DNA of 64,000 nt from Bugula neritina (lineage: Eukaryota; Animalia; Bryozoa): NCBI GenBank assembly GCA_964035545.1, contig OZ037772.1, positions 9,417,150-9,481,149 of the forward strand, in the 5' to 3' direction. Below the pieces are notes generated by a model that worked only from the letters and a program-made list of their open reading frames with translations, was not told where the DNA came from and did no database searches. Numbering within the stretch: position 1 is the stretch's first letter; each line of letters opens with the position of its first letter. Below are positions 19,263 through 64,000 of this stretch, one piece after another. Both the position numbers and the translations under genes were made by a program.

Positions 19263-21715
19263 TTAGTGAGGTTTATTACTTGTGTGTCCTCTCTTAAGAT
19301 GGTTAGCAAAATATTTCTTCTTTGTTGTTCTGTAGTCACATGTATTGCAAACATGTACATTTTCATCAGAGTGAGTTGCTATATGTCCTTCCATAAAGCC
19401 TCCGTTTGGTGTCTCATATCTACACAGAGGACATTTCCATTTTCCTGTTCTATTGTCTGTAGGCCCAAAATAAAAGAGTAAATTGCTTATATAACAGTTG
19501 CAACATCATATCACATTGTTTAAGAACTGCTTATAGTAAATTATATTTAATACACACACACACCCACACGCACACGCACGCGCACGCGTACACACACACG
19601 CGCACACATTCATGGACAAGCAAGAACACTGTAAAAACACCCAACACTAAAAAATAGTAGGGTCTATCATCGGAAATAGTGTTGTAACTACAAAATTACT
19701 TATACTCATTATTAATTTTATATAACTTTTATCACAACTAAATCTAGTCAGTCAACAATAAATTAGCAACTAACCAATAGTTGGGGTCAATGCAGAGACA
19801 TTGCTGGCTCTAGCCAGCGAGAATGATGGAACGGAAAAAATCTCATCTGTCTGTTGATTGGATGTTGGATTTTGCTGAATAGAAGATGGAGTCTGTGAAT
19901 GAGTTGGTTGCGTGAAGAGTCTAGGTAAAATAGAATGACTCTGATTTACTGCAGAAATATCTTCACTGCTATAGAACAGAAAACTATCTGTTTGTCTGTC
20001 TGTCTGAAAGTTTGGTAGACAAATATTTTGGTCATAAGTTGGTAGATTAAATGTCTGTAGACTTGGAGTTGGTTGTACGAAAAGTTTAGGCAAAGTAGAG
20101 TGGCTCTGAAGAACTGCAGAAGTATATTTACTCTCAGAAAACTGGACATTCTCTGCTTCTGCATTTGCCTGTAAATTTGGCAGTAAGATGTTTACGTCTT
20201 GAGTTGGTAAACTGTTTGTCAGTAAACTTGGTAAATTATAGTTTTGGTCTATGCTTGATAGATTTGATTGAGATGGTACCATGAAAATCTCGTATAAATC
20301 AAAGTCGCTTAAATTTACTAAAACAACATTGTTTCTCTCAGCATCTTGAAGGTTTTGATTTAAAGTGTCTGTCTGCAAGTTTAATGTTTCCGTATTTGGG
20401 CTAAAGACTGGCACAGTCTCAAGTGTTTGCTCTACAAAGGTGTCAGACAAAGTGAGATCACCTCCTTGTGCTGCAGGATTGCTACCAATGTCCTCACATT
20501 GAATATCTTCAGTTGTCGCACTGGTTTCTGGATCTGATGACTGAAGATTCCTTTCCCAAGTTGATGAATGAAACTCAGGTAAAGTAAATTGACTCTCATA
20601 CACCACTGCAGCACTTTCTCTATCAAGAACATGTATATCTTCTACTTCTTTGCTAAATGGTTCAGATGACTGGATTTCTTGGTAACCAGATGGCAGCTGG
20701 AAAGTGTTCTGTGTTATCACCATGTCTGCTGGAGAATCTGTTCTTTCTGGACTGTTTAAATATTGCTCTTTTAAAACTCTCACAGCTTCTGCAGTTTCTA
20801 CAAAAGAAATAAACATCCCTTTGCAACTGATACTTTTTTATAGAATGTGCATGCAGTTTTTGCACTTGTCACAAAGTTTTTAACAAACATTTCAATTTTA
20901 ATTTGTTTCTATCAATACAGATTTCAGCAACATATTATACACTGTCTTTTTATTGTCTGAAAAAATAATATTTAGTACTCTTAAACTTGCTCAAACCTTA
21001 AGTTGACATATAAATTTAGAAACATTTGAAACTTTACTTAGCAACTTTGCTACATATTAAAAAGGTAATACACTCAACAAAATTTTTTAACCCATCAAGT
21101 GTCCTAAACTACAAAGTGAACGGATAAAGGTGCACACAGATATAAGCAGTATTGATATTTTGGTAACAAATGGTCGACTGAACTACCCTAGGGAGCGTAT
21201 AAGACAACTCTGACCAGCACTGGCTAGGTTTGGGGGTGGTGGAGTGCCCTCCAATGTCAAATGTTCTTTTTTGTCCACTAAACACATTTCCCTCTAGCAA
21301 TTATACACCAGTGCATATTAATTTATTTCAAATTACTAACCAGCATCAGCTGTCACACTTTTTGAGCTGGTGTTCAGGTAAACATTTCCTTGATCTTCAT
21401 TAGAATCATGTAATGCCTGCCATAAATCTTCTATATCTAAAATGTAGATTTTGTAACTTTTAAAAACATTTTTAGCTTCTCTTATCAAAAAGTGCAGATT
21501 GTCCTGCAGATAAAATGAACTACATAAACTAATCAACTCAAATTTCTAAAGCTGGTAAATATTATGAAAAAAACAATTTATTTCCTATGCAATATAGACA
21601 TGTGCCATACTTGATCTGCATTTCAACCTTTAATACAGTAAAATATATGCACCAAATAGATTTAGGAATTTACTGAAATACATTCTCTATACGTACTTGA
21701 CATATCATCTGCCAT
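19263..21715 (-). CDS. ZF array unit 1: disordered S/T/Q-rich protein with two C2H2 fingers
   Basis: MADDMS micro-exon 21715-21697; exon ~21437-21341; large exon ~20797-19774; finger exon DNRTGKWKCPLCRYETPNGGFMEGHIATH...CNTCDYRTTKKKYFANHLKRGH...KPH*. Phase-1 introns. Confidence 0.85.
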
Positions 21716-22444
21716 CTTAAGTAAAACTCAACACTAAAAGTAAAGTGAAACTGTATAGACTTGCTGTAACACAATTTTATATGCACACACATGGGACTAG
21801 ATAAGATTAGGTAGCTTTTTCTTCAACTTCCTAAGTTACAGTATTTTGAAAAACACTGCACTTCTTTCAAAAAGCAAAAAAGCTTTGCTGTAAAAACCTT
21901 TGCATAGCCCGCTATTTTCATATTATTTTATTTCATTATACGTGTGTTAATCAAGGGGTTTTTATAACTATATACCTAAAGCTTTCATATTAAATTCTAG
22001 TAGATTCAATTAAAGATAATTTGTTTAATTGCATGCCAAATACATAAACTTTCAATTTATTCACTTGAATTCCTAATAAGATATAAGCTGGCAAATTTAT
22101 AAATTACATTTATGTTCCATCTTGATTTCTTATGCAGAAATTTTTTCTAAAACTAATGTAAGAAAAAAAAATTTTGACAGAAAGATAATTAGCACCCAAA
22201 AATCAAATAGTGTGCTCATCATGTGAATTCTTACATCAATAAGTATGAGGTATATGATAGTTTGTAAATCCATGAAAAGATTGAGCAAATTCTATGTCAT
22301 TCAAAACTTGACTGACTGCAATTTGCATTCGTTCAGCTGGCAGAGTAAAGTGACTTTGGTTTATGGCAAAAATATTCTGCTTGTATACAATTTAAAGGTT
22401 TTTGGTTTCAGTATTTGTTAGCTGACTCATTGATTGATTGGATT

Positions 22445-22660
22445 AGGGAGCAGCCGTGGTCCAAGGGTTAAATCGCTTGCTTTGTGAACACAAAGTCATG
22501 AGTTCGAACTTTGACAAAGGTTGTTGGTGATGTTAGGAAAAGCATCCATAATTGTTCCTGTGCCTCATCTGAACAAGTTCCTAGCCTGTTCTAACAAAAA
22601 CCCTTTCTATTAAGGGTTTCTCACAGGTATAGCAATTATAAACTTGCATGAGTTTTTTGT
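22445..22660 (+). mobile_element. tRNA-derived SINE, family 1
   Basis: Colinear with 1184-1404; B-box-like GAGTTCGAAC. Confidence 0.8.
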
Positions 22661-62462: not shown

Positions 62463-63940
62463 TTAGTAAGGTTTATATCTAGCGTTACAACTTTTAGTGT
62501 GGGTATCATAATCGCACTTCTTTTTTGTTCTGTAGTCACATATGCGGCAGACATGTACATTTTCACAAGAGTGAGTAGCTATGTGTGTCTTGATGAAACG
62601 TTTATTTGGTGTTTCAAATCTACACTGAAGGCATCTAAATTTGTAGGTTGTATCATCTGTAAACACGAAATAAAAAGAAAATTAAAACAGTTGATCTAGA
62701 AATTGCAAAATTATAATTCAGTGTAAGCTGTTTATGATAATTTAAATTTACCCACCCACCCACTCACCCACCCACCCACTCACCCACTCACCCACCCACC
62801 CACCCACTCACCCACCCACTCACCCACCCACCCACCCACTCACCCACTCACCCACCCACCCACTCACCCAAACACACACACACACACACACACACGCACA
62901 CACACACAAAGATATGCACGCAGATCTACACTTTTGCTTCACCAAACACACACAAAGCACAAACATTCAAACTTATGCTGAAGATATGGTGAATCGGGGA
63001 AGATTTTTGTAAGTAGAAAAGTTGGTTATAATAATTATGCTACTTCAATTGTAATTTATTAGTTAAGAATAAATTGATGACTTACCATTAACTATAGTAA
63101 AAGCAGAAGAATTGATGGCTTCAGACCCTGAAGATGATGAAGTAGAACAAGTGGCATCTGCTTGTTCATTAGATGTTTGATCCTGCCTAGTAGAAGATGA
63201 GGTCTGTGAATAAGTCGGTTCTGTAAAATATCCAGGCATAGTAGAGTGGCTCTGGTTTACTACAGAGGTATATTGACTCTCATAATACTGGAAATTATGT
63301 GCTTGTCTGTCTGTCTGAAAGTTTGGTGGATGAGCATTATGGGTATAGGTTGGTAGAGTGGATGTCTGTAGTCTTTGAAAGTAATAGTTCTGGTGCATGT
63401 TCAGTAAATTCAATTGAAATGGTACCATAAATATATCAGGTGAAAACAAATTACTAAAGTTTCTTGAAGAAGCATTGTCCCTTACAACAGATTGAAGGTT
63501 TTCATTTGATGAAAGTGTCTGTTGATCTAATACTTGATTAATCTGGCTAAAGTTGGGTGAACTTCTAACATTCTGTTCCACAGAGGCTGCAGAAGGAGTA
63601 ACATGGCTTCTATGTCTTGGAGAATTGCCAACAAGTTGCATATTTCCGGCTCTTCTGCTCGTTTGTGAAATTTGTGACTGAATATGTTCTTCATAGGTTG
63701 GTAAGTGTGAACCATGTAAGAGACAATAATATTCAGACCATGTAGTAGTATTGTCTCTATCAGAACCTTGAATATTTACTCTTTCTGTGTTTCTCGGTTG
63801 AGATGACGAAGAAATCTCCTGGGAACCAGATGGTAGCTGGGATCTGTTTGTTGCTATTGACAGATCTAAAGGAAGTTCAGTGTTTTCTACATTCTCCACA
63901 TTTTCTTGTCTTGGATTTAGCGCTATAATGTCTTTATTTT
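62463..63940 (-). CDS. ZF array unit 11 (5' end outside the window; PLDLS; C2H2 + C2HC fingers)
   Basis: Large exon ~63940-63086 with PLDLS at 63858-63872; finger exon FRCLQCRFETPNKRFIKTHIATH...CRICDYRTKKKCDYDTHTKSC...KPY*. Confidence 0.83.
62750..62907. repeat. (CCCA/CTCA)n + (CA)n microsatellite
   Basis: Direct reading; last intron of unit 11. Confidence 0.9.
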
Positions 63941-64000
63941 CTAAAAAAAAGAGAACAAAAAATGTTGTTCAAGCTTATAGATATACCAACACCAAAACAT

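Follow-up and report, generated by a model that had tools for sequence, protein, structure and literature searches.

A single-locus tandem array of lineage-restricted C2H2 zinc-finger genes in Bugula, with candidate CtBP-docking motifs in one subfamily

Introduction

Lineage-specific zinc-finger clusters are a recurring route by which animal genomes invent regulators. The KRAB-ZNF clusters of tetrapods, the ZAD-ZNF clusters of insects and the FiNZ-ZNF clusters of cyprinid fish are examples. KRAB-ZNF proteins are defined by an N-terminal KRAB domain (PF01352) that binds TRIM28, the ZAD domain is PF07776, and to our knowledge the well-studied lineage-specific clusters all use a folded effector domain. 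Here we describe a tandem array of C2H2 genes found in a 64,000-nucleotide (nt) stretch of DNA from the bryozoan Bugula neritina (the window: contig C8, OZ037772.1, positions 9417150-9481149; 33% G+C, no N), which belongs to a genome of 216 Mb in 321 contigs. Its members end in a pair of fingers preceded by a long region predicted to be disordered, and one subfamily carries PLDLS, a short motif that may recruit the corepressor CtBP.

The Bugula family resembles the KRAB-, ZAD- and FiNZ-ZNF families in several ways. It is likewise a lineage-restricted tandem cluster, it keeps its fingers in a single 3' exon and its presumed effector in separate upstream exons, and it evolves by birth and death with change concentrated at the helix positions that contact DNA. 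It differs from them in having no KRAB, ZAD, SCAN or BTB domain, in carrying two fingers rather than about 8-15, and in consisting of one array of 17 genes. Where KRAB and ZAD proteins use a folded domain as effector, the Bugula family presumably uses a short linear motif within disordered sequence. Judged by sequence, the family appears to belong with the lineage-specific clustered C2H2 genes; its cassette-like exon design is unusual, and the function proposed for it below is put forward as a hypothesis.

Other comparisons are instructive. Drosophila lola and mod(mdg4) also possess serial exons for C2H2 or C2HC finger pairs, a uniform intron phase and modular joining, whereas every Bugula unit comes with an ATG exon, a disordered exon and, it appears, a promoter of its own, and shares no BTB 5' region with the others. 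The central fingers of CTCF are of the same subtype, C-x2-C-(D/S)-Y-x-(S/T) with a seven-residue linker, but the likeness is one of finger type only: the Bugula proteins have neither the N- and C-terminal regions of CTCF nor its 11-finger array and are not orthologues. The CtBP-dependent C2H2 repressors (ZNF366, ZNF516, ZNF217, ZEB1/2, Kruppel, Knirps, Snail, KLF3/8/12 and the Ikaros family) likewise combine C2H2 fingers with PxDLS motifs in disordered sequence. PLDLS is the original CtBP-binding sequence of E1A, PXDLS recruits CtBP in zinc-finger repressors such as ZNF366, and multiple PxDLS copies are also present in ZEB and ZNF366 (PMC1693901). Those repressors are old, mostly single-copy and conserved, with more fingers, whereas the Bugula family is young, fast-evolving and tandem, its motif copies vary by exon duplication, and most of its paralogues lack the motif.

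Seventeen genes at one locus

The window holds 11 paralogous units (U1 to U11), all on the minus strand, ten of them complete and the last running past the window end (Table 1). The whole array comprises 17 units and 19 two-finger modules, keeps the same strand throughout and extends some 24 kb past the window end. Genome-wide searches with the finger exon and the long exon placed the family at C8:9,436,4xx-9,504,9xx and found no second locus. This is a real tandem, single-locus array of lineage-restricted zinc-finger genes. A first-pass annotation of the window had proposed a tandem array of at least 11 such units, and the genome-wide copy number agrees with and extends that count. A second copy of the three-gene block U8-U9-U10 exists as U12-U13-U14 (48969-61131 versus 66432-75640 in extended coordinates), and past the window end a few units or fragments contain stops.

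Each unit starts with an ATG exon of 19 coding bases, which encodes MAD-x-x-S/P plus one further base, follows the pattern ATGGCAGAT-nnn-A-n-G-y-CAA and is succeeded by a GTAAGT or GTACGT donor. The exon is found in 17 of the 17 units, reading MVDNMS in unit 12 and containing a 3-nt insertion that preserves phase in unit 15. All ten ATG coordinates given by the first-pass annotation are correct, each being the first base of a minus-strand ATG. Spliced models were built for the 11 window units by picking acceptor-donor pairs that fit the paralogue alignment. In every one of them the introns are all in phase 1, the acceptors are AG, the donors are GT (mostly GTAAGT or GTAATA) and no internal stop occurs, so the phase-1 introns and open frames reported earlier hold throughout. 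The models span 221-460 residues, unit 11 being partial in the window; its ATG exon and its second PLDLS exon lie 1442 nt and 521 nt past the window end. At the stop-codon frequency of the window (0.067), the chance of an open 280-codon exon is about 4e-9.

The earlier description of two fingers per unit fits most units but not U8, which has three, or U9, which has four. In U9 the exon at 53931-53566 joins a finger pair to the end of a long exon, and the exon at 53061-52868 supplies the second pair. Unit 13, the duplicate past the window end, retains this four-finger fusion.

A block of about 260 nt upstream of the ATG is conserved in all units and all subfamilies (alignment of 16 upstream regions), at least as strongly as the coding exons, and the promoter regions of U8 and U12 are 94% identical. 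It contains TATAAA about 105-125 nt before the ATG and, about 200 nt before it, a conserved AAAGCTGGCTA...AATAGCTTT pair with reverse-complementary AAGCTA/TAGCTT cores. Each unit appears, from these features, to be a gene with its own TATA promoter, and the strong conservation of the block suggests either promoter co-regulation or gene conversion. Because the conserved TATAAA sits about 105-125 nt upstream, the 19-nt segment is most likely not the true micro-exon that it had been called, but the coding end of a longer first exon, which probably includes some 70-90 nt of 5' untranslated region (5'UTR) as well. A trans-spliced or internal first exon, considered for the TTTTAG that stands 18 nt before each ATG, is held to be less likely than one driven by the TATA box. 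A polyadenylation hexamer lies no more than 800 nt from the stop in 10 of the 11 window units.

PLDLS motifs in a predicted disordered region

Between the fixed N-terminus, a conserved six-residue MAD-x-M-S peptide, and the C-terminal fingers lies sequence predicted to be disordered. AlphaFold2, run on the U5 long exon with an 18-sequence family alignment, gave a mean predicted local distance difference test score (pLDDT) of 37, and not one residue exceeded 70. The long exons and the motif exon have no Pfam match even at E<5, where only noise appeared; this accords with the earlier remark that no KRAB, SCAN, BTB or ZAD domain is visible. The ESM Atlas offered no credible look-alike (best score 0.75). 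The long exons are weakly constrained coding sequence, because their ratio of non-synonymous to synonymous substitution rates (dN/dS) is 0.40-0.85. Several islands are conserved across subfamilies in the same alignment, namely SHLPTYEE, NENLQ, IFMVPFQLNL, NLPTY-QN, SAVNQSHS-LP-LFTQPTHSQ and NQQTDEIHSTPSTSQ.

Exact PLDLS occurs nine times in the window, three times each in U5 and U6, twice in U7 and once in U11. As first noted from the sequence, these nine copies are confined to those four units; every copy is read in frame within a predicted exon, and PLDLS is absent from all other frames of the window. They lie outside the fingers, within the predicted disordered region (pLDDT <50), and are distributed over three diverged module types: exon 2 (e2), exon 3 (e3) and the start of the long exon (L-type). 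The five residues are constant despite synonymous codon differences (CCA/CCT, CTA/CTG, TCG/TCA), and exon duplication has raised the copy number in U5 and U6. In the L-type module PLDLS is retained both here and in a second B. neritina assembly, GCA_010799875.2. Over the 18-sequence alignment the motif position has the consensus L-P-x-D-(L/M)-S-(M/I)-A. In U4 the long exon has absorbed the motif module, whose motif has degenerated to PLILS (33495-33509). Four variants had been listed by the first-pass annotation, PLILS in U4, PTDMS in U9, PIDFS in U3 and TIDLS in U8; all are where it placed them, but the last two occupy a different, C-terminal site in the long exon.

The same genome encodes a CtBP orthologue, with exons on contig C2 at about 9936495-9939818. 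One of its exons matches solved CtBP1 and CtBP2 structures at 3e-37, and its N-terminal region is present and very highly conserved, including AFCDAQST. Recruitment of CtBP by the A-type subfamily is plausible, and we judge it about as likely as not that the PLDLS members bind CtBP.

Zinc fingers and recognition helices

The fingers are classical C2H2 fingers (C-x2-4-C-x12-H-x3-5-H) that score above the Pfam cut-off. The U5 finger exon matches zf-H2C2_5 with 41.4 bits (cut-off 27, E=1.1e-10), the finger exon matches zf-Di19 with 34 bits, and U8 matches zf-C2H2 with 28.4 bits (cut-off 25.2). In the B-type modules (U9b, U10 and U11) the second finger is C2HC. The closest solved sequences to the finger exon are DNA-contacting fingers of CTCF (phmmer E=3e-11). 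Net charge is low in the A-type finger exon, and the B-type finger exons are strongly basic.

The first-pass annotation had described the finger pair as variable. Amino-acid variation is indeed concentrated in the recognition helices: over 18 two-finger modules, the columns of helix positions -1, 1, 2, 3, 5 and 6 have an entropy of 2.37 bits, against 1.04 elsewhere. Pooled over six phylogenetically separate close pairs, helix codons have a Nei-Gojobori dN/dS of 0.92 and the scaffold one of 0.41, and the helix excess of non-synonymous change is significant by Fisher's test (p=0.02). The McDonald-Kreitman-like contrast of dN to dS in the same pairs is not significant (p=0.16). Positive selection on the helices is not claimed, the helix dN/dS being about 0.9 and not above 1; change at the DNA-reading residues is relaxed or diversifying, which falls short of proven positive selection. 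The helices of the three-finger U8 are nearly unchanged in its B. neritina copy, and the family is therefore not uniformly fast-evolving.

Distribution and exchange of exons

A word-indexed protein search with the U5 long exon returned 9 proteins, and an exhaustive phmmer search of 1.84 billion representative proteins returned 8. All named matches are hypothetical proteins of B. neritina (EB796_015311, 015312, 008475-008477 and 023923); the rest are open reading frames (ORFs) of JGI metagenomes on short contigs with no source organism recorded. The lineage restriction proposed earlier is thus matched by a relationship that, among these 1.84e9 representatives, extends by name to B. neritina only, and the family would so far be confined to the genome of the window and to Bugula neritina records. 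A search of metagenome contigs with the U5 long exon found no related loci, although its patterns were too specific to U5. Our literature search turned up neither a paper about a Bugula zinc-finger family nor one about clustered zinc-finger genes with PxDLS motifs.

Contigs L001 and L013 of GCA_010799875.2 and metagenome contig L012 (JGI 3300003318) share about 75-85% DNA identity with the window where they align, in introns as well as exons. The ATG exon is present in L001 and L013 and two-finger exons in all three. L013 keeps the subfamily order of the window, with B-type units followed by a three-finger unit and then an A-type unit. The window genome is therefore distinct from GCA_010799875.2. 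In a maximum-likelihood (ML) tree of long exons, three subfamilies are common to the window genome and the B. neritina data; the best cross-genome pair is U3 with B. neritina P0010 (support 100/99), and U5, U6, U7 and U11 form a starred clade of their own inside A-type. The public models EB796_015312 and EB796_023923 (P0016, P0018) merge two to three neighbouring long exons and omit all finger exons. As the public models are finger-less chimeras, the family is in effect unannotated, and this is one correction that the array offers to existing annotation.

Exons have moved between units. L012 carries a U3-like long exon (1196-2185, 83% DNA identity) with an A-type finger exon (from about 2442 onward), whereas the finger exon of U3 itself differs; U11 combines an A-type long exon with B-type fingers. 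Because L012 and U11 pair mismatched long and finger exons, exon cassettes must have been exchanged between units, and since all introns are in phase 1, motif and finger exons can duplicate or swap in frame. An independent modular family, as the first reading of the sequence had it, is supported.

A (TG/CA)n microsatellite stands in the last intron, directly upstream of the finger exon, in U1, in the B-type units and in units beyond the window. It is possible that this last-intron repeat is a hotspot for exon swapping. U1, U3 and U8 plausibly contain one more exon, a symmetric acidic one that reads D-E-D-W...N-E-D-L-R-N and recurs in the B. neritina models P0006 and P0016.

Proposed function and competing explanations

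The design common to these proteins is a fixed MAD-x-M-S N-terminus, a disordered region of 200-400 residues with short linear motifs, and a C2H2 pair at the C-terminus. They would be small, probably nuclear regulators, rarely with three or four fingers. The fingers would position the protein on short DNA sites, and in A-type members one to three PLDLS copies would recruit the CtBP corepressor, so that units 5-7 and 11 would act as transcriptional repressors. Transcription, nuclear DNA binding, CtBP binding and repression are what we infer, and the repressor mechanism as a whole is plausible. Intact ORFs, dN/dS below 1 and the conserved TATA promoter lend indirect support to expression. We give a probability of about 55% to the reading in which the locus is a birth-and-death tandem array of 17 paralogous protein-coding genes whose PLDLS members repress through CtBP. 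If it is true, the effector of the Bugula family is a docking motif that varies in number by exon duplication, and the uniform phase of exon boundaries lets modules recombine in frame.

A number of observations weigh against it. Canonical PxDLS is restricted to A-type, in 4 of the 11 window units (U5-U7 and U11), and is missing from U1-U4 and U8-U10; the homologous position reads PLILS in U4, PTDMS or PTDTS in B-type units, and PADMV and SLTNM in U1 and U3. Most e2 and e3 modules of the comparison assembly have lost the proline, with S or Q in its place (SLDLS, SLDLW, QSDLL, QSDLS). The disordered region is rich in S, T, Q and N and could equally be an activation region. The TGEKP linker is typical of DNA-binding finger arrays, whereas here the fingers are joined by S-x-E-N-V-H-V; two fingers read about 6 bp and would have low sequence specificity. 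Three public runs from one study, none of them recorded as RNA, gave over 35900-41890 short, DNA-like contigs with no intron-skipping joints and with loose ends that do not fall at splice sites. A complex prediction of CtBP, entered as three exon peptides, with U5 exon 2 scored 0.00, which is no answer and evidence neither way; a job with CtBP split into separate chains is unlike those on which the method was calibrated.

The weightiest alternative accepts the genes as real lineage-specific regulators and denies that PLDLS is a working CtBP motif: it would be one form of a broader motif, L-P-x-D-(L/M/V/F)-S, which occurs close to either end of the disordered region and would have another partner, or part of an activation or condensate domain. 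This we hold to be tentative and on the unlikely side. The non-canonical residues at the homologous position and the lost proline speak for it, as do the B-type block LPTDMSMAPD, near-identical in both genomes though non-canonical for CtBP, and a second conserved site, P-x-D-(V/F)-S (PSDVS, PTDVS, PIDFS), at the long exon's C-terminal end; from that block and that site a broader family motif is suggested, of which PLDLS is one form. Other islands (SHLPTYEE, IFMVPFQLNL, SAVNQSHS, HSTPSTSQ) have no known partner. Set against this are the identity of PLDLS with the E1A sequence (PMC1693901), its persistence in three diverged module types through synonymous changes, its multiplication by exon duplication in U5 and U6, and a CtBP that is both present and highly conserved. 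The finger pair itself invites a further doubt. Ikaros-family proteins have a C-terminal two-finger dimerisation domain, and a pair of exactly two fingers at the extreme C-terminus, with a linker other than TGEKP, a C2HC second finger in B-type units and a low charge in the A-type exon, might be a protein-protein or RNA-binding module that makes these proteins adaptors and not DNA-binding factors. Ikaros-family fingers are indeed among the PDB matches, but the matched entries are not the dimerisation fingers, and the best solved matches are the DNA-contacting fingers of CTCF; variation at helix positions -1 to 6 is what is expected of DNA readers, and the B-type exons are strongly basic. We regard an adaptor role as unlikely.

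The CtBP-repressor reading should also be kept apart from the full model of the first-pass annotation, a genome defence of the KRAB-ZNF kind in which diversifying fingers track transposable elements and silence them via CtBP. The tandem array with its lineage-specific A-type expansion, the bias of variation to the recognition helices, the shuffling of modules and the transposon insertions inside the array would all suit such a system. However, nothing beyond analogy links any member to transposons. Transposon-silencing ZNF systems are marked by positive selection at DNA-contact residues and by binding sites on transposable-element families; here the helix dN/dS of about 0.9 does not exceed 1, the McDonald-Kreitman-like contrast lacks significance, and 17 genes with two fingers each, reading about 6 bp, fall far below the transposon specificity of the long KRAB-ZNF arrays. 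Moreover, the two genomes have three subfamilies in common, in which at least U3 and P0010 form a clear pair, the U8 helices have barely changed, and PLDLS is found in one subfamily only. A KRAB-like defence role is speculative, drawn by analogy, and in our judgement quite improbable. Equally long odds attach to the grander version, in which the Bugula group evolved its own clustered repressor system with copy-variable PLDLS recruiting CtBP, cassette exons and, possibly, the tracking of transposons or other fast-changing targets. Finally, the locus might be one complex transcription unit that joins exons across units, as in lola and mod(mdg4), or a set of mostly untranscribed, decaying duplicates. 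Uniform phase-1 introns would keep any cross-unit splice in frame, the ab initio B. neritina model EB796_023923 (1230 residues) does merge long exons of neighbouring units, some units past the window show stops or are fragments, and none of the public runs found is recorded as RNA. Yet every unit has its own ATG exon and conserved TATA promoter block, a polyadenylation hexamer follows nearly every window unit, and 11 of 11 window units are intact with dN/dS below 1, which makes this the least probable of the alternatives, and a very improbable one.

Coordinates and inserted sequences

Table 1. Features of the array, in window coordinates, and of the CtBP gene, in coordinates of C2:9934000-9942000
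Feature	Position	Strand	Details
Unit 1	19263..21715	minus	411-residue model; exons 21715-21697, 20797-19775, 19456-19263; two C2H2 fingers
Unit 2	23185..24634	minus	288 residues; exons 24634-24616, 24395-23733, 23369-23185; two C2H2 fingers; no PLDLS-type motif
Unit 3	25476..27804	minus	353 residues; exons 27804-27786, 26782-25934, 25669-25476; PIDFS 25959-25973
Unit 4	32304..34446	minus	347 residues; exons 34446-34428, 33571-32747, 32503-32304
Unit 5	35990..38994	minus	460 residues; exons 38994-38976, 38148-37984, 37895-37740, 37338-36490, 36183-35990
Unit 5, PLDLS (three)	38069-38083, 37825-37839, 37256-37270	minus	
Unit 5, promoter/5'UTR block (example)	38995..39254	minus	from alignment of 16 upstream regions
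Unit 6	40528..43590	minus	455 residues; exons 43590-43572, 42749-42585, 42499-42350, 41863-41024, 40721-40528
Unit 6, PLDLS (three)	42670-42684, 42429-42443, 41781-41795	minus	
Unit 7	45133..47976	minus	408 residues; exons 47976-47958, 47133-46969, 46472-45624, 45326-45133
Unit 7, PLDLS (two)	47054-47068, 46390-46404	minus	
Unit 8	48969..50812	minus	221 residues; exons 50812-50794, 49793-49443, 49264-48969; three fingers; TIDLS 49459-49473
Unit 9	52868..58258	minus	451 residues; exons 58258-58240, 58057-57281, 53931-53566, 53061-52868; PTDMS 57987-58001
Unit 10	59624..61131	minus	334 residues; exons 61131-61113, 60932-60141, 59817-59624; finger 2 C2HC; motif position PTDTS
Unit 11, 3' part	62463..64000	minus	long exon 63940-63086, PLDLS 63858-63872; finger exon 62656-62463 (B-type, C2HC)
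Candidate acidic exon	U1 ~21340-21437; U3 27330-27423; U8 from ~50283 downward	minus	symmetric (phase 1-1), good AG/GT sites
(TG/CA)n microsatellites	19534-19695, 53145-53446, 59932-60099, 62823-62966		
CtBP exons	~2496-2651, 2839-3008, 3843-4123, 4396 onward, 5645-5818		within C2:9934000-9942000

Two further open frames interrupt the array. The 3.3-kb intron of U9 contains, on the opposite strand, a transposase-like ORF of 416 residues (55467-56717, plus strand) with a DUF7869 match (PF25273, E=7e-11); its absence from the duplicate unit 13 marks it as a recently inserted mobile element. The other, an open frame of 525 codons (29174-30748, minus strand), separates units 3 and 4 and has no Pfam match even at E<5; (TA)n tracts border it on both sides (about 28774-29079 and 31109-31665). 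Both the transposase-like ORF and the 525-residue ORF are insertions into the array, not targets of its products.

Past the array lie genes with EGF- and TSP1-like open frames. Upstream of it, an open frame at 1470-1718 on the minus strand has a B-box-like cysteine pattern (CEQHGELLIKACKKCDRLICVECD) and may be an exon of a TRIM-like gene.

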